A stretch of 60,119 nt of DNA, the filler included, from Sluysia triapertura (taxonomy: Eukaryota): assembly GCA_046118255.1 (NCBI GenBank). It is 5 parts of 5 records of this genome, joined end to end, with 100 filler letters (N's around TTAATTAATTAA, not from the genome) between each part and the next. Parts side by side here need not be neighbours in the genome. Positions count along the whole stretch, not along the records: positions 10,938 to 23,398 come from JBJNIA010106651.1; 4 more parts are not named here. One strand, 5' to 3'. The notes under the pieces are model-generated. The model saw nothing but the letters and a program-made list of their open reading frames with translations. It was not told the DNA's origin and did not search any database. The stretch's first letter is position 1; each line of letters starts with the position of its first letter. Below, piece by piece: positions 12,594 through 45,603 of this stretch. The translations under genes and the position numbers were made by a program.

Positions 12594-14383
12594 TGTTGAG
12601 TAATGCTAATGCTAAATTTAATTTATCATGTGAATCTCTTACAATCTTAGACTTACTCATTTAAGGGCTAAGTTGTAAGCAGTATTTTAGAAGAACTTAT
12701 ATGGAGGTATAAGTAGGTTTGTTAAATCAATTATATTTTTTGGGCAAAATTTGTTTATGCGATGCTAATTTTGGCTCTTTTAAGAAGTTATTAAATGATA
12801 ATAAAAAATGATCAAACTACAGTTAAGAACTTTTATTAGGTTTAATTTAAATACAAATGTTATTTTAAGTTATAGTTTTCAACCTTATTTCAAAAACGGT
12901 GAGCCTTAAATACAAATCTATTCTTTAACTATAAATTACCTCTATCTTACGTCCGATTAAAATCGGCGACCTTATTTTAGTAATAAAAAACTCGAAAAAT
13001 CTTTTAGAATGATATATTAACAAATTGACAAATTTATAATAATGTATTAATACACTTTATAAAGAATATGATAATATCAATAATAATGATTTTAATTAGG
13101 TTATTGTATAATCTGTAATGTATAGGTTATTAAAAGTTTCTTCACCTCTTAAAAATGGGGATAAAAATAATAAAAGAATTAAATTGGGTATAAAATTTAC
13201 AATTAATTAAAAGTGATTTTAAAAACTTATAGAATTCAAACTAACGGTTAACTGAATGAAATTTGTTAGAGAAAATTATAGTCCGTAGATAGATTGAGTT
13301 TCCGAGAAAATCGAATATGTAATTTGGATATTGAATTTTGAAAAAACACGTTTGGTAAAGCTGTGACAATATTTTTATAACAATTCCTGTTGTTGAAAGT
13401 TTATAAAGAACATGTAAAGAACGTGTAAACATTCTATTTGTATGAGAATGTTTATACATATTTTTAATTTGTCCTCGACCGAGAATTTAATTTATTAAAA
13501 TAAAGAATTTTGGAAATCATAATTTAATTTTTAAAGAATTTTTGGAAATAATATTGATAATGATTTAATAAATAATAATAATAATAAAAACAATAATAAT
13601 AATACCATTTAGAATACTAAAAAAATCAATATTTTTTAACTTATTATTTTGTTTTTAGACTTAAGTAACTGTTTGTAAACTATTTTTAGACAATACTAAA
13701 AAATCAACTACACATATTAAATATTGTACGAAAAATCTATTTTTAACCACACTTGCACTTTTAACTACACACATTGACACGTATATGTGTATTTTCATAA
13801 ATTTTTATTTACCTATAGTCTAAATTAAAAATATTTTGTATATCGACAAAAAAACAATATTATTTTATGTAATATTATTTTATGTACATTTTTTATTATG
13901 TAAATTCTATTTTTAGAATTATTAATTTATTTTATAATTTATTAATTTATAAATTTATATATAACGAATTATGTAAAAAGAATATTTTTAATAAATAATT
14001 TGTAAAATTAAATTTAATGGATAAAAACTTTTGTTTAAATTTTGTCACAAATAAACTTGAAATTAAGTATAAATATATAATACTTCACATAATATTTCAC
14101 AACAACAAACAACATAAAATTCACGATGGTCAATCAACATATTCTTAACAAAATCATACACAAAAATCAGGACGTTATACAAATTCTAATAGTTTAGAGA
14201 ATAACGGCATCAATTCAGAATTGACCACATTCATATAAAAAGAATAACCGTTAGTCAGTTGTTGTTGACGTAAAATCTTACTCAAAATCTTTTTATTCAA
14301 TTTGTTTTTTTCGACTGTTTAAAGGGTTGAAGCAAAGTTAATTTCAAAAATTAATTATCACTAGTATTTAATTTTTTGTAACA
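12594..14383 (+). repeat. Long dispersed element, family H, copy 1 (TGTT...AACA, hairpin blocks, decayed ORF)
   Basis: Shares ordered blocks with 30106-31793 and 37883-39939: CTTAGACTTA..TAAGGGCTAAG..GGAGGT, CCG-N8-CGG, CACC..AAA..GGGGA, AAACTAACG, CCTYGACC. Ends approximate. Confidence 0.7.
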
Positions 14384-15788
14384 TTTATAAATTTATTATA
14401 CAACGTTTTTGTAGATTGCTTTAATTTTTATCCTAATACAAATTATTCAAATTGTGTTTTCATAATTAAATTATTTTCGTAGCATTAAACTTACATAGTT
14501 ATAAATTGACGCAAAAATCCTTTGTGTTTTGATAGTTTAACATTAAATTTCATTTTCGAAGATTCTTTTTAATTGGGATCCGAAATGCATAATTCTAACC
14601 TGTCATTGCAATAAGACAGAAACCTATAGCTCTAGTAACATTGTAGCTATAGTTCTTTAACTAGTCTGTTGACACTTTGAGATATAAAAAACCTCCAAAT
14701 AATTATTTTATACGTCACTTACGTATTGGCCTTTAAGTGAATAAGTCTAATATCCTAAGGAATTCACGTAGATTAAAATCTAAATAAATAATCATATCAA
14801 TACAATACTGAAAAAATATAATTTCACTCTCACAATTCTTCTTGAAAAATTTCCACAGAACCAGGATATCAGAGAAAGAAGATAAATGAAATCCATTGAT
14901 CTGTCGACATTAATCGTTACCGGCCTACTGACTATATTATAACTGATCGAGAACTGAAATTCTCATTTTTATTTATTATATTTGACCTAAGTTGGTGAGT
15001 CTAGTTATTATTTTTTTATTGACTGAATAGAAAATAAATTTTAAAAAAAATTTGTTCTACATCTTTTAAATTAATAATTTTTTGTTTAACTTTATTTATT
15101 TAATATGAAAAAAACTGACAATAGAGCTCAACAAAGGAGATAGACTTAATATTTTGAATAAAACACATTAAATATATAAAATGAACTCTTTTGAGTAATA
15201 CTGATATTTTAGTAGTAAAAATTAATTCGAATTTAAAATATTAAGTAACATGCTTAGCACTTACATTTCAGGTCAACGAAACGAGTATCTGAATTCACAA
15301 CTCCAGATAGAATAGATATAATAGACATTTATAAAATAAGATAATAAAGAAATTTCCTATTAGTAAAAGAGTGTACCTCCAGAGAAATCTTTAAGAGAAA
15401 ATATCACTAGAGAACTTAAATTATTACTAAAGGATTAAGAGTTCAATATAAACAAATATAAATTGCAAGATATCAGTTAAACATATTTAAATTTCACGTC
15501 AGTTCGGAATATTAATTGAAAAATAAATAAACATAGCACGTAAATTTTGAAGATTCAATCGTCAATAGAGAAGTTTCACCAAATTTTTAGCAGAAGCATT
15601 TTATTTTAAATTTTATTCTACATTATTATTAAGTGATGATAACCGTTCGTTTTATTTTAGTCTTGACAGTGTTGTTGATTGTCTATATTTTTAATCATCA
15701 TCATTAATTGTGTAATCCGACAATAAAAACAAATCTAACATTAGTGTATCCCTGTATTCGATTTTAATCCACCACAACATGTAAGTGT

Positions 15789-16560
15789 CATGGTTATGGT
15801 GGCCAACACTCACAACCACTAGAAATTTATTTAAATTTCACAACAAATTAAATCACAATCATATTCAACATTATCAACTTACATTAACTATTTCACAAAA
15901 ATCATAACTTGTCATTCACATTAACCCAACAATAAACTCATTTGAAATAATACATCTAATACTCCCAAACCCTTCATCTTACACTACATTTGGCAATTAA
16001 TATCTAACATTCGATAACATTCATTTAATAGTTTATTCTCTTAAATCGAACCACAATCACAAACTTACAATATATAAAACACAAATACATTTAATACCAT
16101 TCCACAACACTAATATACCTATTAGAACGCATAACATACGTTGAATCAATTACAACATTCAAAACTCACTATTCATTTACATATAATCATCATCAACATG
16201 GAACAACAACACCTTAAATATACAAAGAGTTGTATTGCAATTGTCCCCTTCAAATTCAACAAATTACAATCTTCTCAATAAACCTTTATCCATTATAATT
16301 CAATACATAAAACTTCTTGTCAAACATAAAAACTTCAATCAACATCAAAGAATTTATTCTAACACTCCTCAATTCACTTCAAGACTCATATCAAATATTA
16401 TACCTTCAAAGATTAAGCATACTTAACAATTCTTTCAAAACAACCTTTACTCAGAAATTTAGTTTCAAACACAATTAAGTTATTTCACTATGTTAAAATT
16501 CTACAACAAGTTACCAAAATCTAATACAGCTTCAAAGAATTCAATTTTTTTACAATGAAG
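15789..16560 (+). repeat. C/A-skewed dispersed repeat (possible old solo LTR)
   Basis: Starts CATGGTTATGGTGGCCAA, compared with CATGGTGTGGTGGTCAA at ~51348 and CATTGTAGTGGCCAA on minus at ~23593. G-poor body; right end uncertain. Confidence 0.45.
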
Positions 16561-16832
16561 TAGCAGCGATAACTCGAGCACCGTAAACCCCATTATCGTT
16601 GCTCTTTCATACAATATCAGTAACTCTTATTTCATTTTCTTATCTTTATGTCAGAAGAAATCAAGATTAAAAGAAAAGATCGTTTAATGTGTAATTTAAG
16701 AGAAATTTATGTGATTTTTTTTTAATTCCTGATAATAATAACAATATTGTTTTGTTGTTATTATTATTATCAATTATTGAATTATTTTAGTCAAATTTTT
16801 AATTTTTAATTAATATCAATAAGCTGGTTACT

Positions 16833-16895
16833 ACCATCACCAGTGTTGACACTATGTATCACAATTCTTATTAAAGTGCCAACACTGATGATGGT
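16833..16895 (-). ncRNA. Candidate pre-miRNA-like hairpin 1
   Basis: 21-bp stem (16833-53 / 16875-95) with a 21-nt loop. The two plus-strand C.A mismatches become G.U pairs on the minus strand. Confidence 0.45.
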
Positions 16896-16944
16896 TAATC
16901 ATCAGATCAATAATTTTCTGCCAAAATAGCAGTCAGATTACACA

Positions 16945-17001
16945 TCATCCAATCAGGACTTATTATTCTCAGCTGTCATTATTAAAGGCCTGATTGGATG
17001 A
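16945..17001 (-). ncRNA. Candidate pre-miRNA-like hairpin 2
   Basis: TCATCCAATCAGG / CCTGATTGGATGA perfect 13-bp stem plus further pairing; ~57 nt long, 50 nt from hairpin 1. Strand inferred from hairpin 1. Confidence 0.4.
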
Positions 17002-17348
17002 CCAATAATAACACTTTTTACACCAAACTATCTAAAAAATAAAAAAGAAAAATTGTTAAAAATTAAAAAAGAGAGATATACTTTCTACGGCATGACGAAT
17101 AATTTGAATAACGTTTTCCAGTTTTCAATTAAAAATCAATAATTAACTGTGCTAATGTAGCTACTCTCTACAAATATTCAAAAGTATTGCAAGTAGAATC
17201 CAACTATCGTAAAGCTCAAATGAAACCAAAATTGTCATTTAAAATCATCGAAACCAGAATATTATTCACAAGACTTTAAAAAGATCAAAAATACGACTAT
17301 CAAAGATGATGTGGAACAAATAAAAGTATTGTCAAAAATACACTGCTA

Positions 17349-17624
17349 ATGATGGATGACCATTTCGTTCAAGATGATGTTTTTTCCAATGATGACTACG
17401 ATTATTTAATTCAATCTTTAGCATTTGTTGATAGTATTGTTGGTAAAACAAGTTTATTTTATCAGTATTCAAATTGTACTTTCACTCCTCGATTTACATC
17501 TATAGTTGGAGTTGATTTTCGGCGAAAACGTATAGTTCGAGAATATATTAATAATTCAGATGGTTTATTAGGTCAACGTCAAAAGTTACATTTACAATTA
17601 TGCGATACTGCCAGACAAGAAAGA
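17349..17624 (+). pseudogene. RAB27: Rab27-like small GTPase N-terminal fragment with degenerate motifs
   Basis: DDYDYLIQSLAFVDSIVGKTSLFYQY...VGVDFRRKRIV...GQRQKLHLQLCDTARQER aligns to Rab27 (DYDYLIKFLALGDSGVGKT..LYQY..RIHLQLWDTAGQER). G1 and G3 are mutated and similarity stops at QER. Confidence 0.8.
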
Positions 17625-17639
17625 TCAATTAGATATGCT

Positions 17640-18686
17640 CTTACGGTTAGATCAGACGAAGTTTCATCTTATGGTAACATAATCAACATCGTAACAATAA
17701 AAATGAAAATTATCAATTACCGAGTTATGCACATAGCAATTCAATTATCCAAAGGTTATTTAGTTCATAGTCAATCCAAAGTAAAACATCATTTACAAAA
17801 ACTTCATTTATTTCTATGGCAAATGATTTTTCTAACTCCACAAGCTATATTTCAAGTTATGTTATTAGTATCATATGCGGATTCCACTGATCCCGTATAC
17901 GAAGATCTTCGTTCAATACTATTTAGAGTCAAAGAGTGCGAAATAATCGTTAATGCTCATTCAGTACAAAATATATGTAATTATAGTGATGACATCTATT
18001 TATCGGAATCTGTCGATGTTATTTTTCTCAATGACAACTTCCTCGTTAGAACTGTTACAATTTCATTATTCCAACATATTGCATTTTGTGCTTTATTAGT
18101 ACGTAATTTGTTTTTCTGGAAGTTGATGATGTTTACAAAGTCTTATATTCGTTTTCTATAAGTAATTTAATATTATTCTTCCTTTCTACCACCTCGACGT
18201 GCCTAAAGACATTCTCATCCATCTGTTTAGCTTCATTATTTATGCTATCATAGACATTATCTCTGCTGATACTTATGTATTGTCTCCATGCTTCAACAAA
18301 TCATTTATATTCATAATATTTCAATCGCCATATTATTTGGTAAGCGAGCTAAGAGCACAAATTTCTCTAAATTAACTATTTTTTCCACTCCGTTTCTCAC
18401 TTCAGATATATATAATCATCAAGTTTTCATCCAAAGATAGATCACGGGCTTTAAAGACCTTTTCTAAATCTATCTGATAATCTGCTGATATTTCAATATA
18501 AAAGTTCAATGTTGAGACATGCAATAGAAATGGCATAAATTTTATTGCTTTTTCAATTTGTTGCAAAAATTGTCGTTTCCATGGTTCCAAATCTTCGCAG
18601 ACATTTATTTGAACTCCATACGACATAAAATAAAAAATCGAATTCAGAATTCTTATAAACGCAACTGGAAATAAATTCAAAATCAA
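17640..18686 (-). pseudogene. Decayed coding-like sequence of unknown identity
   Basis: Long near-open frames broken by stops (..FYIEISADYQIDLEKVFK.., FVEAWRQYISISRDNVYD..) and a possible ~34-nt GT-AG intron at ~18367-18400. Confidence 0.3.
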
Positions 18687-18860
18687 GAATTTAGTAAAGT
18701 TGAAAATCTAATTATTGATAAATAATCATTGTAAAATAAATAGTTTCAATTTTGATATAATTGAAAAATATCTTTTTAAATTATATTGATTAAAATCAAA
18801 ATAAAGTAATTTGATATTTTTTAATTACTAAAATAATTTCTTTTTGTTTAAATAAATCAA

Positions 18861-19094
18861 TTACAAATCCATTATTTCGAGTTCCCTTTCAAAATTATCC
18901 ACCAATAAACTAATTTCTATTATTCTATCTCGGTTTCTTTGAATCACTTCTTTATCGTACAAATTTTGTGTTAAAGTTTTTAACCAATTTTGAATATTTT
19001 CCGAAATATCATCATATTTTTTATCGATTTTTCCAACATGAACACTTTGTGATGTACCAATAGCATTTTCCATTGATTCTTTATCGATTAATCT
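18861..19094 (-). CDS. DRC3: Dynein regulatory complex subunit 3 (LRRC48), terminal exon
   Basis: RLIDKESMENAIGTSQSVHVGKIDKKYD...RNRDRIIEI..ELEIMDL* matches the DRC3 C-terminus (DKDTIVNAVGASHDIHLLKIDNRED...RNRKRVKEI). Acceptor ttttAG, phase 0. Confidence 0.85.
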   Translation of the reverse strand, partial: RLIDKESMENAIGTSQSVHVGKIDKKYDDISENIQNWLKTLTQNLYDKEVIQRNRDRIIEISLLVDNFERELEIMDL

Positions 19095-21556
19095 CTAAAA
19101 AATAAAATTATCAAATCAAAAAAAAAGAATAAGCGAACTTAATAAAATAAAATAACAGATTTGCTAATAACTTGTAACCTCATTAAAAATATTGATGTTT
19201 AATAATACATATCAAACTTGATTTATATTGAAAATGTAAAAATTAAATGAAAATTAATTAAGAAACTATTTTTTAAGTAAAATGAACTCTTTCTTAAATA
19301 TTTTTTTGACTTTTTCATTAAGTAAACTTCAAAAGTATAATTAAGATAATCAAAATGCTAAAAGATTTCTGTACATTTTCGGTATAGAAAATAGAATGCA
19401 AAAATATCTGTGGTGACTCTTTCAAACTTACAATTTTATCATCAGTATAAAAATAGACAAAATCACTAAACTTAAATCATTTGAAATGTCAACGTATCAC
19501 AAACACTGTACATATTACATTTCTGTCTATACATTTAATATCATTTTACGCTTCAGACAACATACACCAAATCTCTACCAATCACAGTCTTAGAACATTT
19601 AAAAACTCAATCAATTTAATTAAACATATTTAAAAGTCAACATTTATCTGTCAATCTAGACACAACGTATTCCAAATTATCATTCAAAATATAAACATTC
19701 ATTTTATTCATTCATATATATATATATTTTCATTGCAGAAAAATGTTAATTTTCGTTATGCAGCAATCTCACAACATCTTCCGCAGCTTTTGTATGTTTA
19801 AAATTACGATTATTAAGATAAAATAATTCTTATTCCTTCATTTCGTGACATTTCTACATCAAACGGAACTTTCCTCATCGTCCATAAGGAATAATAAAAT
19901 CTAATATTAAGATAATAATATATTTTAGCCAAAAATTTCTTATAAAAATTGCCATTATAATCATCACTGTTGTCACCAATATCACAACTCAATTAATATA
20001 GCTAATATAAAGTTACTTTAATGATATGCGAATTGGCTACAATAGCTGCTGATTCAGATTCCATTTACAAGAACTTTTACAATTTTGTCGAAATTAATTT
20101 ATGCAATGATTAATTGAAAAAATTCTTTCATCAACTAACAGCCAATAATATTTAGTTAAATTTTGAAACAAAAAAGTTACTGAAGTCGATCAAAGACAGA
20201 AATTAAAGAATTTAAATTTATTTAAGGAAGTTCAAGAAACTATTCTACATCAGAAAGTAGCATTACCAAAACATATTATTATGATACAAATGAGTACGTT
20301 GTTCAAGTACAAATTATCAAATTTAATTCTGAAGATCAAGAATAAACAAATTTGTTATGCATTGTGAAACCAATATTGTTATTTACTGATGAAGACTTTA
20401 ATGTCAGAGTCAAACCTAAATGTTAGATGTTAATGTACGATTTAGAAAGTGTAAAGAGCCATGTTCCACATTATAATTAAAATAGTCAAAATACAGACAA
20501 CGACAAGTGATGCTTTTATTTCAGTATGTTATAATATTACTTAACAAGACAAAGCAATTTTAATTTTAAAGCACTTAGTATATGTAAAATTCCATAAGAA
20601 CTCCGTTTTTACAAATCTTGTTCATCCAGACTTAATTTACAATTTTTCCCTTAATTAAACACTTATTCAGTATCGTGTTTCTTATTGGTAAAATATCTTT
20701 ATCAACAAACTAACTCTAACTTATGGAAAACTTGTTAAAAATTTATTCGGACAATTTAGTAGACATTTTTATTTTTATCCTTTTTATTCTATAAATATGC
20801 TACACTTTATTTATGTAACAAGAATATTTTGTGCCGTTATTGTTTTATTCAATAATAAAATCACGCACTTATGTATTTTTCTTAATGAAACCAAATGATG
20901 AATTAAAATTTTGAATATGAATTGAAATAAATTCTTTCCCTTTGATACTAATCGGTTGAAATAAACCTTAGTCATGCTTGTAAACTACTCATTCTTAGAA
21001 TATATTTACACATAAGTTAGAGTAAGGACTAACAGCTATTATTAAACTTTAAGAAGTCTCGTATCACTGAAATTTGATTATTTTACTACAAAGAAATTAC
21101 AGTTTTCAATTAATCATAAGTGAAAATCGTTAACATCAAGCTATCTATGATTATTTTAACTTATACAAAAGGTACGTCGACGAGTAAAAGTTCAAATCCA
21201 ACAACTATAAAGTTCATATTATGATTTCTAACTGCGATAATCTTCTTATTAGTTTTTCAAATTACGTAAATGAAATTGTTCTACATTCCAGAAAATTAAA
21301 TAGGTATAATTTCAATTAATCACTTGTCGTATGTTGATCTGTAATGTCGACCATACTTTTTGAACATTTAATTTCGTCTTATAATTTCTTTCCTAACCAT
21401 TCTAGATTTTATTATAATCCTATCAGAAAACAATGAATCAATATCGAAGTTATACAGTTAGGTTAAGTTGTAAACATAATTATATGAATAGTCAGAAAAG
21501 TGAGTCTGACATGCATAAATTTAAAAATAATGCTAATAATGTATAAACTTAATGTA

Positions 21557-21713
21557 TGTTGGGGTAAAAAGGTCTAAAGTTCCATTTGGTAAAATTGACT
21601 ATAATAAAACAAAATCGTTAGACGGGGCTGATAGCTCAGTGGTAGAACATCGGACTGCGCAGCTAGAGGTCCCGGATTCGATCCCCGGTCAGTCCATTTT
21701 ATGAAGTCTAACG
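21557..21713 (+). mobile_element. ~157-bp LTR-like element carrying a tRNA-like gene, copy 1
   Basis: TGTTGGG...GTCTAACG with flanks TGTA/TGTG; collinear with 45461-45603 over its whole length. Confidence 0.75.
21625..21696 (+). tRNA. tRNA-like Pol III unit (Cys/Ala-like body, GCG in anticodon position; probably not a functional tRNA)
   Basis: Paired acceptor stem GGGCTGA/TCAGTCC, A-box TAGCTCAGTGG, B-box-like GATTCGATCC, TTTT terminator. The anticodon stem is poorly paired. Confidence 0.7.
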
Positions 21714-21938
21714 TGTGGACTTCCTGACCACTTGCTAGAAGATAAAATTTGCTCGACCTATTTGAATTGTAAAAGTAGGAAATTATTCTAAATATTGTGA
21801 AATTGGATTTACTACATGATATACGGTGATCAACCATTAAAATACATTATCGAATAGTTAATATCATGAATTAAAATTTGAGAATAATAAAATTCGGGTA
21901 ATAAATAGATCATTTACCTTTATTTAAATTTTTTAAAA

Positions 21939-21939
<1 letters not shown>

Positions 21940-21996
<57 letters not shown>
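21940..21996. repeat. (ATT)n microsatellite
   Basis: Direct reading; similar tracts at ~679-728, 35044-35096, 44469-44523 and 47995-48069. Confidence 0.95.
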
Positions 21997-21998
<2 letters not shown>

Positions 21999-22190
21999 TT
22001 TTTCATCATCATCAATCATCATCATAATTCTACTATTCTATTGAGATCATTTCAAATTATTAAGGTAACAATCACAATACCAATACATGATTGAAATACA
22101 AATACAGATATTGATAATTCAAAAAGCTTATCTAAAGAATAAATGTTTATAAATTTTTTATTGATAATAAATAAAAAATCGAATATTAAC

Positions 22191-22319
22191 CGTTCTCAGC
22201 TCTTCGGAAATGTCATCTACAGGATCGCCTTTGTTGATTTTTTCTTGCATTGCAGATGCTTCTTGTAATACTTTTTCTTTGTAAATATTAATATATTCAC
22301 GTATTTTACTAATGCTATC
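22191..22319 (-). CDS. DRC3: DRC3 internal exon
   Basis: DSISKIREY...KEKVLQEA...GDPVDDISEELRT, 43 codons, AG/GTTAAT, phase 0-0. Aligns to SLMAQCRDLE..HEKLLE..GDLDEDLPNDLRA. Confidence 0.8.
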
Positions 22320-22758
22320 CTATTGAAAAATTATTGTTATAAAAACAAATTATTTATTAATAATAAAATTAAAAAACCAAAAGTAAAACCATTATAAAAA
22401 ATGTACAAATTTAAGGCAGCCTAATAAAAGTTAAAATTTAATGAAATTTAAAAAAATTTGATTTATTAGATCATAAAAAGTACCTAAATTATTTGATAAA
22501 AATAAACAAATATTTTCTACTTATAAACAAATAATAAGTAACAGTAACAAATGAGAAACAGTTTTCATAAATGCATGTTTTTATAAAATCTTCAATGATT
22601 TTAATTAATTTAATTAACAAATGTACTTTTATTGTTTTAAATATTAAAACTTTGGTTGATTTAAACATCTTATTTAACTATCGTATAATCAAACGGAATT
22701 GTTTATTGTTTATTTATTGTTTATTTATTTATTTATAAGTTAAATTAATATTACTAAC

Positions 22759-22950
22759 ATTCATATTCTGTATAAAACTTTGAACATTTTCTTTTACATT
22801 TCGTTCAAATTCTTCAATTGCTTCTTCAATTTGATCCATCATTTGTATTTCTAAAGCCATTAATTGATTTTTCAATTCAGAACAACGAAGTTTGTATTTC
22901 TGTCGAATATATTCTTCATCTTCAGTTTCTTTGGAAGGTTCCATAAAAAT
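22759..22950 (-). CDS. DRC3: DRC3 internal exon (upstream LRR exons not found in this block)
   Basis: ..ELKNQLMALEIQMMDQIEEAIEEFERNVKENVQSFIQNMN matches LMTLEMQLVEQLEETINMFERN..FIENV. AG/GTTAGT, 64 codons. Confidence 0.85.
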
Positions 22951-23398
22951 CTATTTACATTTATAATTTGAAATAGTAAAACGACTTTATAGAAATTTTA
23001 ATTATTAAAAGTCTCCAATCAATCCAAGTTACTCTAATATCAGTAAAACAAATATTTTAGATGTGCCTAATTCTATAAAATTAAATTTAACCGACCCGAG
23101 ACAATATTTCTAACAGATAATTAACAAACTAAGCAGTCTTGATATATTTCAGTTATCTCAATTTAAATTCTTAGTTTTAAATTAAATTAATGTTCCGCCA
23201 CAATTAATATTATTTAATATTTGCAATCCATTTTCAATAGTCAATACATCAACGATACGCTATTCAATAAAACAAATACTGAACTTAAAATTGTATCATG
23301 AAGGGTAATTTCGTGGCTCTTTTCGTAATATTTTGTGGCTTTATATATTTTTCTCGCTGATTTAGAACTCAATAATAATGAAATTGAAAAAGAAAAAT

Positions 23399-26073: not shown

Positions 26074-27227
26074 TATATTTCATTATGGATTTGGCTTTCA
26101 AAATTACACTATTATTTTTAAAAATACTAAACGCATATTTTAAATCCGATCTAGATAGAATGTTAATGTCTACTAAGCAATAGGAACAAACTTTAATGCA
26201 TAAAAATGTCAAAATATTAACGAACTCTAATTCCTCAGCTTTATTAATTTTAAATTTATGTAAGATAACGCTCGAAGAATTTATAGAAAATTATTGTTTG
26301 TCCATTAGCCTTTTTTAGTACAGAGATTAATTTTCTTTCTAAACTTTGCTGGTGTGTTAATTTGAATTTCATTGCCTTAGATTTAACGTAATAGATGGTG
26401 AAAAAACATTTTTATTCTTATACCTGAAATAAAATATCTTTGTTAAACTTCATTGTACATAAAAATATTAAGTGAAAAATTTGACATTCAAGTCTAATTA
26501 AAACAATAAATAAAATTAAAAAATTATAAAGATAAAATCATAATAACTTTAAAATAATAATTATAATTTATTTTGCACAATATTATTTTTGTAAAAATAA
26601 TCTATAATTAATTGAAGAAAGATGTAAGAGATTAAAAAAGCTTGAAAATTGTTATGTGAAATTGAATGAATGTTTAATGGTATAAGTTGAAATCGTGAAG
26701 ATAGTGTATTAAACATCCTTTAAGGCAAAGTCAGTCCATTTTATTTAGTCATGGATTTTTCAAGTTTTCTACTTTATTGCAAAACATATAACAAATTATC
26801 AAAATATAATAATAATTGAAATATTTTATAGTAGTGATGATTGAATGAAATTTAATAATCTTCCGTTTAATTTATAATTTCTCTACTGAAATACTTGGAA
26901 TAATACATTTGTTTTTTTGGTAATTAGTATATTAAAATATCGTTCACTTAGTTTCTTTTCTAAATTTAGATAGACTTATTATATTTATCATTTTATATTC
27001 ACTCCAAATATTTGATCTAAAGTTATTTATAATTTCTTATTTTGAATTTCATTTGAGATCACTGCTTTCAAATAATACGTCATTGATGATATTGTATCAT
27101 TGTAAAAATTTTAAGTACATTAAATTTAACAATGTAAAATTAAAAATTAAAAATAATTTATAGATTTTATAATTATTTAAATAAGCGGACATTAAGTATG
27201 GATATGTGTAAATGTATTAATATAGAA

Positions 27228-45460: not shown

Positions 45461-45603
45461 TGTTGGGATATAGGCCTAAAGTGGCATTTGGTATAATTGA
45501 ATATAATAATCTAAAATTACTAGACGGGGTTGATAGTTCAGTGGTACAACATCGAAATGCGCAGCGAGAGATTCCGGGTCAGTCCATTTTATGAAGTCTA
45601 ACA
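45461..45603 (+). mobile_element. ~143-bp LTR-like element carrying a decayed tRNA-like gene, copy 2
   Basis: TGTTGGG...GTCTAACA with a perfect ATAT TSD (45457-60, 45604-07). The tRNA-like part starts at 45527 and has a T-arm deletion. Confidence 0.78.

Follow-up and report, generated by a model that had tools for sequence, protein, structure and literature searches.

A putative Helenus-type solo LTR built around a decayed tRNA-like unit in the genome of Sluysia triapertura, probably a flatworm

Is the decayed tRNA-like sequence found at this locus of Sluysia triapertura the remnant of an ordinary tRNA gene, or is it the core of a small mobile element? The window, a stretch of 60,119 nucleotides from the genome assembly GCA_046118255.1, consists of five parts joined end to end, and the piece analyzed here, positions 10938-23398 (JBJNIA010106651.1), contains the sequence in question together with ∼10.6 kb of upstream and 1.7 kb of downstream DNA. 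An initial annotation had interpreted a 157-bp segment of this piece as the solo LTR of a non-autonomous TRIM with a tRNA-derived Pol III promoter, perhaps moved by the integrase of its family L. The boundaries of this segment, retained in Table 1, come from that annotation, where they were drawn from a second copy (45461-45603) that lies beyond the analyzed piece, as do a possible third fragment near 26730 and the family L LTRs. Its base-level claims that could be checked within the piece are all exact, including the first eight bases TGTTGGGG (21557-21564), the last eight bases GTCTAACG (21706-21713), and the flanks TGTA and TGTG. The tRNA-like unit, placed ∼65 bp inside the segment, starts 68 nt from its left end and does contain A and B boxes, a paired acceptor stem, and a TTTT run. 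The inverted repeat around the unit is also present, with arms of 8 nt, CGTTAGAC and GTCTAACG, rather than the 7 nt reported. As discussed below, the balance of the evidence tips modestly towards a Helenus-type (TRIMp3) solo LTR, probably in a flatworm.

Table 1. Coordinates of the 157-bp element, its parts, and its immediate flanks in the window
Feature	Position	Strand	Remarks
Left flank TGTA, one half of a putative 4-bp target-site duplication	21553..21556	.	3/4 match to TGTG
Whole element, putative Helenus-type solo LTR	21557..21713	+	157 bp; sequence confirmed
U3-like part	21557..21624	+	68 nt, GC 0.31; opens with TGTTGGGG, 21557-21564 (putative integrase-recognized end)
TATA-like run TATAATAAAA	21600..21609	+	25 nt upstream of the tRNA-like unit
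8-nt inverted repeat, left arm CGTTAGAC	21616..21623	+	
tRNA-Ala(CGC)-like pseudogene, putative R-like region and Pol III unit	21625..21696	+	Rfam tRNA; relaxed ARAGORN
A box TAGCTCAGTGG	21632..21642	+	Contains TRGCY and YGG
B box GGATTCGATCC	21674..21684	+	tRNA position 53 is A, not G
TTTT, putative Pol III terminator	21697..21700	+	Directly after the discriminator base
U5-like tail, 13 nt	21701..21713	+	Closes with GTCTAACG, 21706-21713, right arm of the inverted repeat
Right flank TGTG, putative second half of the target-site duplication	21714..21717	.	
TGGACTTCCTGACC, complement of the unit's 3' end	21716..21729	+	Starts two bases past the element

The tRNA-like unit is recognized by the Rfam tRNA model (RF00005) with a score of 34.9 bits (gathering score, 29; E value, 2.8e-4). 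Its acceptor stem, GGGCTGA/TCAGTCC, comprises 7 pairs, including G3.U70. The internal promoter of tRNA genes has the consensus TRGCNNAGTGG in the A box and GGTTCGANTCC in the B box; the A box of the unit, TAGCTCAGTGG, is a perfect match to the former, and its B box, GGATTCGATCC, differs from the latter by a single base, the A at tRNA position 53. With default settings, ARAGORN calls no tRNA in the unit. Once the thresholds are lowered to 90%, tRNA-?(Arg|Ala)(gcgc) is called; the anticodon loop has 8 nt, and three stems (D, anticodon, and T) contain mismatches. The minimum-energy fold of the unit is not a cloverleaf (z = -1.3). The intact-stem cloverleaf, 7-nt anticodon loop, and assignable anticodon of a functional tRNA gene are all missing, and the unit is a pseudogene that encodes no working tRNA. 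Its ancestor may have been a tRNA-Ala(CGC), a lead that comes from the G3.U70 pair, the T arm, and the CGC reading of the loop in comparison with tRNA-Ala sequences. In the preceding U3-like part (21557-21624), an Rfam scan recognized no RNA family.

tRNA-derived sequences inside LTRs are the defining feature of Helenus, a set of TRIMs that has been grouped with Cassandra and Ajax as TRIMp3 (Kojima 2024, PMC10886601). The initial annotation had raised the prospect of a tRNA analogue of Cassandra; this class was in fact described and given its name in that 2024 paper, which also reports 4-bp target-site duplications (TSDs) for its animal members. Accordingly, the element described here would at most add to a known class, and its membership cannot be proved from one copy. 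Most Helenus tRNA-like units are described as non-functional tRNAs, and their conserved parts are given as TRGCY plus YGG for box A and as GGTTC for box B (PMC10886601). The 157-bp element likewise has a decayed tRNA-derived unit with A and B boxes, located in the 3' half of the putative LTR; its box B reads GGATTC, one base off GGTTC, so that, unlike in Helenus, the exact GGTTC is absent (A53).

The element also resembles Helenus in the order of its parts. In the Helenus LTRs from a nemertean, a brachiopod, and the ark clam Tegillarca, as printed in PMC10886601, an initial TGT is followed by the U3, the tRNA-like unit, a T4-T6 run that stands a few nucleotides past the unit, a tail of 11 to 24 nt (counted by hand on the printed sequences), and a terminal ACA. 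The element under study consists of TGTTGGGG, 60 more nucleotides of U3, the 72-nt unit, T4, and 13 nt that end in AAC(G); the layouts were compared by eye rather than by computer alignment. Among the mussel Helenus LTRs shown in the same paper, a T4 run follows the unit in two of the three, and the tail then measures ∼30 nt; those from oyster and pen shell have no T run in this place. A T run after the unit is thus a regular Helenus feature, and it fits an assignment of the tRNA-like unit as R and of the short tail as U5. Given the T4-T6 runs in published Helenus LTRs, a T run as such is no argument against an LTR. In the element, the T4 directly follows the discriminator base instead of standing a few nucleotides further on as in the nemertean, brachiopod, and Tegillarca sequences. 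A solo LTR of a TRIM, with a layout like that of published elements of the same kind, appears to be the best available explanation. In a k-mer search of the published Helenus sequence file, nothing beyond generic tRNA motifs was found in common with the element, which would therefore represent a separate family.

The TG start that the initial annotation had listed as part of an LTR signature is in place (21557-21558); the end of this copy is CG (21712-21713), one transition away from CA, and its flanks agree at three of the four positions. The two ends form a short inverted repeat, with TGTT at the start and AACG at the end, and with the CA ending that is reported for the other copy, the pair would be TGTT...AACA. 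In the analyzed piece, the dinucleotides TG, CA, and CG have frequencies of 4.3%, 6.2%, and 1.6%, respectively; 4-nt flanks match by chance in at least 3/4 positions at 10% of sites and in 4/4 at 1.2%; and an inverted repeat of at least 8 nt around a 72-nt core is found in 8% of windows. Taken by itself, this copy thus has TG..CG ends, flanks with a 3/4 match, and an inverted repeat that all lie close to what chance would give. The combination of a TG start, a C[A/G] end, and flanks that match in at least 3/4 positions has a chance of ∼3e-4 if both boundaries are fixed in advance. Up to 250 bp from the unit in either direction, 22 rival TG..C[A/G] boundary pairs with TSD-like flanks exist, and therefore the boundaries are not fixed by the copy at 21557-21713 alone.

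Searches for further copies and for other parts of a retrotransposon gave little. A blastn comparison of the element and its flanks with the rest of the piece returned AT-rich noise and no further copy, and local alignments of the element with 100 nt on each side, in both strands, did not rise above shuffled sequences. A search of 5.8 billion proteins returned no relative for the 50-amino-acid open reading frame that spans the element, and the sequence words of the element led to nothing relevant in the full-text literature. Exact-pattern scans of metagenome, prokaryote-genome, and viral contigs found no copy. Their sole match, metagenome contig JGI24700J35501_10821664, carries GGATTCGATCCCCGGTCAGTCCAT at 716-740, a T arm with the same unusual A53 followed by the acceptor strand. 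As a copy of the element this contig was rejected: it shares just the 24 nt of T arm and acceptor strand, lacks the 5' tRNA half, has 40% GC, and is not matched by any Rfam model. What it contains is probably a piece of some other organism's tRNA-derived repeat, unrelated to the element.

Neither a partner LTR nor a primer-binding site (PBS) or polypurine tract (PPT) was found in the 10.6 kb upstream or the 1.7 kb downstream of the element; the downstream part contains no start of a 3' LTR and no G-containing purine tract. The missing two-LTR structure would be explained if the element is a solo LTR. The heptamer TGTTGGG, which the initial annotation had found at the start of its family L solo LTRs, occurs only once more in the piece, at 15925-15931 on the minus strand. 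This site was discarded as a family L LTR end, being inside a uniformly G-poor stretch. That stretch, ∼700 bp at 15800-16500 on the plus strand, shows a strand-asymmetric depletion of G, with only 3 to 7% G and 18 to 26% C, compared to ∼10 to 14% each in the neighboring DNA.

All these observations within the piece could also be accounted for by an ordinary decayed tRNA-Ala pseudogene that was duplicated, along with its flanks, at the DNA level, the TG..C(A/G) ends and flank repeats being coincidental. A tRNA gene normally has a TTTT directly behind its discriminator base, and a TATA-like run at -25 is equally normal for one. The decayed stems of the unit, the near-chance end and flank signals with their 22 alternative boundary pairs, the lack of a PBS, PPT, or partner LTR in the piece, and the failure to find other copies, be it within the piece or among metagenome, prokaryote-genome, and viral contigs, all point the same way. 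Such a pseudogene would fail as an explanation only if the second copy is as the initial annotation describes it: located on an unrelated piece of the genome, with the same two end points and a perfect 4-nt flank repeat. There is no reason why a duplication should stop 68 nt before and 17 nt after the unit in both copies, and the detailed layout match to Helenus LTRs also argues against this origin, the main rival of the LTR, which appears possible if doubtful.

A copy of a tRNA-derived SINE, or of another short transposon without LTRs, such as a MITE, is a less attractive alternative. In animals, decayed tRNA-like units most commonly stem from tRNA-derived SINEs. The Sm-alpha SINE family of Schistosoma mansoni, for example, accounts for ∼2,340 of the tRNA-Gln predictions made by tRNAscan-SE (PMC2770079). 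The 8-nt inverted repeat around the unit might suit a SINE or a MITE, but repeats of this kind are at the chance level (8%), and no TSD flanks the inverted repeat. No A-rich, simple-repeat, or LINE-derived tail is found behind the unit and its TTTT; since the TTTT adjoins the unit, any Pol III transcript would stop short of a SINE body or tail. Besides, the 68 nt upstream of the unit that are reported to be common to both copies fall outside the transcripts that an internal promoter would produce. DNA transposons with 4-bp TSDs, such as piggyBac, target TTAA, and the flanks of the element are not TTAA. Any of these origins is unlikely.

A similar TATA-like run would also be expected upstream of a small multicopy Pol III gene for a tRNA-like noncoding RNA, whose upstream promoter would consist of a TATA at -25 and of a proximal element near -60, and whose copies would be similar only as far as function extends. 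The conserved block begins at approximately -68 and continues for 17 nt beyond the unit, which is roughly what a gene with a hybrid Pol III promoter would occupy, and neither the A and B boxes nor the terminator is missing. Such a gene is very improbable, given that the unit has no convincing RNA structure (no cloverleaf; z = -1.3), its stems are decayed, only the generic tRNA model was matched in Rfam, and the run TATAATAAAA, which bears only on this alternative, is not significant at 76% A+T, where it is expected by chance.

The DNA across the 3' boundary of the element has a structure of its own. A hairpin at 21687-21729 pairs 21687-21710 with 21716-21729 (DNA fold z = -2.0; 8/200 shuffles); its outer arms are GGTCAG (21687-21692) and CTGACC (21724-21729), and the inner ones are GAAGTCTA (21703-21710) and TGGACTTC (21716-21723). 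The region 21714-21765 has a GC content of 0.40, with 40-nt windows of up to 0.45, compared to 0.24 for the piece. One could imagine that the element is a 5' LTR followed by the start of the internal region and that TGGACTTCCTGACC serves as a PBS for the tRNA-like RNA of the element itself, a self-encoded primer of reverse transcription. To act as a PBS for the 3' end of the unit, TGGACTTCCTGACC would need a 4-nt insertion in the pairing, and its complementarity to the 3' end of the unit plus CCA is, in a post hoc test, equalled by 5 of 4,046 25-mers in the piece and by 19 of 3,000 shuffles. A self-encoded primer was sought in Helenus, and none is reported as found in the account by Kojima (PMC10886601). 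Behind the element, neither an internal region nor a 3' LTR is seen in the 1.7 kb of downstream DNA. The proposal is hardly credible.

On the assumption that the element is a Helenus-type solo LTR, its observed anatomy can be translated into a tentative life cycle. The first bases of U3 (21557-21624), TGTTGGGG, would be the end recognized by the integrase. The decayed tRNA-Ala-derived unit (21625-21696) would correspond to R, with its A and B boxes recruiting TFIIIC and RNA polymerase III, and the TTTT at 21697-21700 would act as the terminator in the 3' LTR, whereas in the 5' LTR the polymerase would read through it. The 13-nt tail (21701-21713) would be the U5, with CA as its original ending. 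In a full element, two LTRs of this kind would enclose a short internal part, with a PBS, at which reverse transcription would be primed, and a PPT; reverse transcriptase and integrase would be supplied in trans by a Gypsy-type element. A 4-bp stagger at integration would result in a target duplication of 4 bp, and subsequent recombination between the two LTRs would leave a single LTR behind. Several features speak against a Helenus assignment, namely, the CG end, the 3/4 flanks, the inexact GGTTC, the single visible copy, the lack of a PBS, PPT, or partner LTR in the piece, and the position of the T4 right after the discriminator base, which is also typical of an ordinary tRNA gene. The solo LTR proposed in the initial annotation is the likeliest of the explanations considered, and a single copy does not prove it.

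The surrounding DNA gives some indication of the host. With 24% G+C and a small number of long open reading frames, the piece looks like DNA of an intron-rich eukaryote. At 17349-17630 (plus strand), it encodes a Rab27-like first exon, whose nearest relatives are the cestode and trematode Rab27 proteins, at no more than 63 to 69% identity. Rab27 has the GTPase motifs GDSGVGKT and WDTAGQE, which are altered to VDSIVGKT and CDTARQE in this exon; it belongs either to a pseudogene or to a pseudo-GTPase paralogue. Another exon, at 11423-11500 (plus strand), encodes an Unkempt-like CCCH zinc finger (Pfam accession number PF25427; 32.4 bits, cutoff 31.1). From the Rab27-like and Unkempt-like exons together, the host is probably a flatworm with proteins that the databases lack. 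An (ATT)n microsatellite of ∼18 units (21941-21996) is located 230 bp downstream of the element.

Platyhelminthes do not appear in the list of Helenus hosts in PMC10886601, and the element, whose host looks like a member of this unlisted phylum, is possibly the first Helenus from a flatworm. If this is confirmed genome-wide, Helenus/TRIMp3 would reach a seventh animal phylum, apparently the flatworms, and a non-autonomous element would be matched with a candidate autonomous partner through their common first bases (TGTTGGG). At the LTR level, PMC10886601 indicates no such link to a partner for Cassandra and does not lead one to expect common LTR sequences in TRIMp3 generally. Elements of this kind inflate the counts of tRNAs and tRNA pseudogenes in genome annotation and scatter possible Pol III promoters across the genome. 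If it is not confirmed, what remains is merely a decayed tRNA-Ala pseudogene.

In its dimensions, the element resembles the known animal Helenus, the LTRs of which are 104 to 323 bp long, are flanked by 4-bp TSDs, and are thought to be mobilized by Gypsy elements (PMC10886601); its 157 bp fall within this range. Unlike Helenus, the element stands alone in the piece and shows no two-LTR form, PBS, or PPT; solo LTRs of Helenus are reported in the same paper for fungal families. With Cassandra, which is found in green plants as elements of 565 to 860 bp (PMC10886601), it would share a general principle: the LTRs of a non-autonomous LTR retrotransposon contain a small-RNA gene whose Pol III promoter is internal. 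However, the gene captured by the element is derived from a tRNA and not from 5S rRNA: an Rfam scan of the element with E values of up to 1 matched tRNA only, with no match to 5S. tRNA-derived SINEs (SINE2), such as Sm-alpha of Schistosoma, have a similar decayed tRNA-like head with A and B boxes. In SINE2, this head comes first and is followed by the body and tail, whereas in the element 68 nt precede the unit and TTTT directly follows it.

The flatworms are already known to harbor a TRIM, the ta-TRIM of taeniid tapeworms, which is represented by many solo LTRs and generates 4-bp TSDs (Koziol et al. 2015, PMC4558846). Unlike in the element described here, no small-RNA gene is described for the ta-TRIM LTR in that paper. 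According to the same source, ta-TRIM transcripts start within the LTR, at the U3/R limit, and are often spliced into long noncoding RNAs or fused to downstream genes. The first eight LTR bases of ta-TRIM are reported to be identical to those of lennie, its candidate autonomous partner of the Gypsy type (PMC4558846), and this common start parallels the argument that the initial annotation had based on the TGTTGGG of the element.
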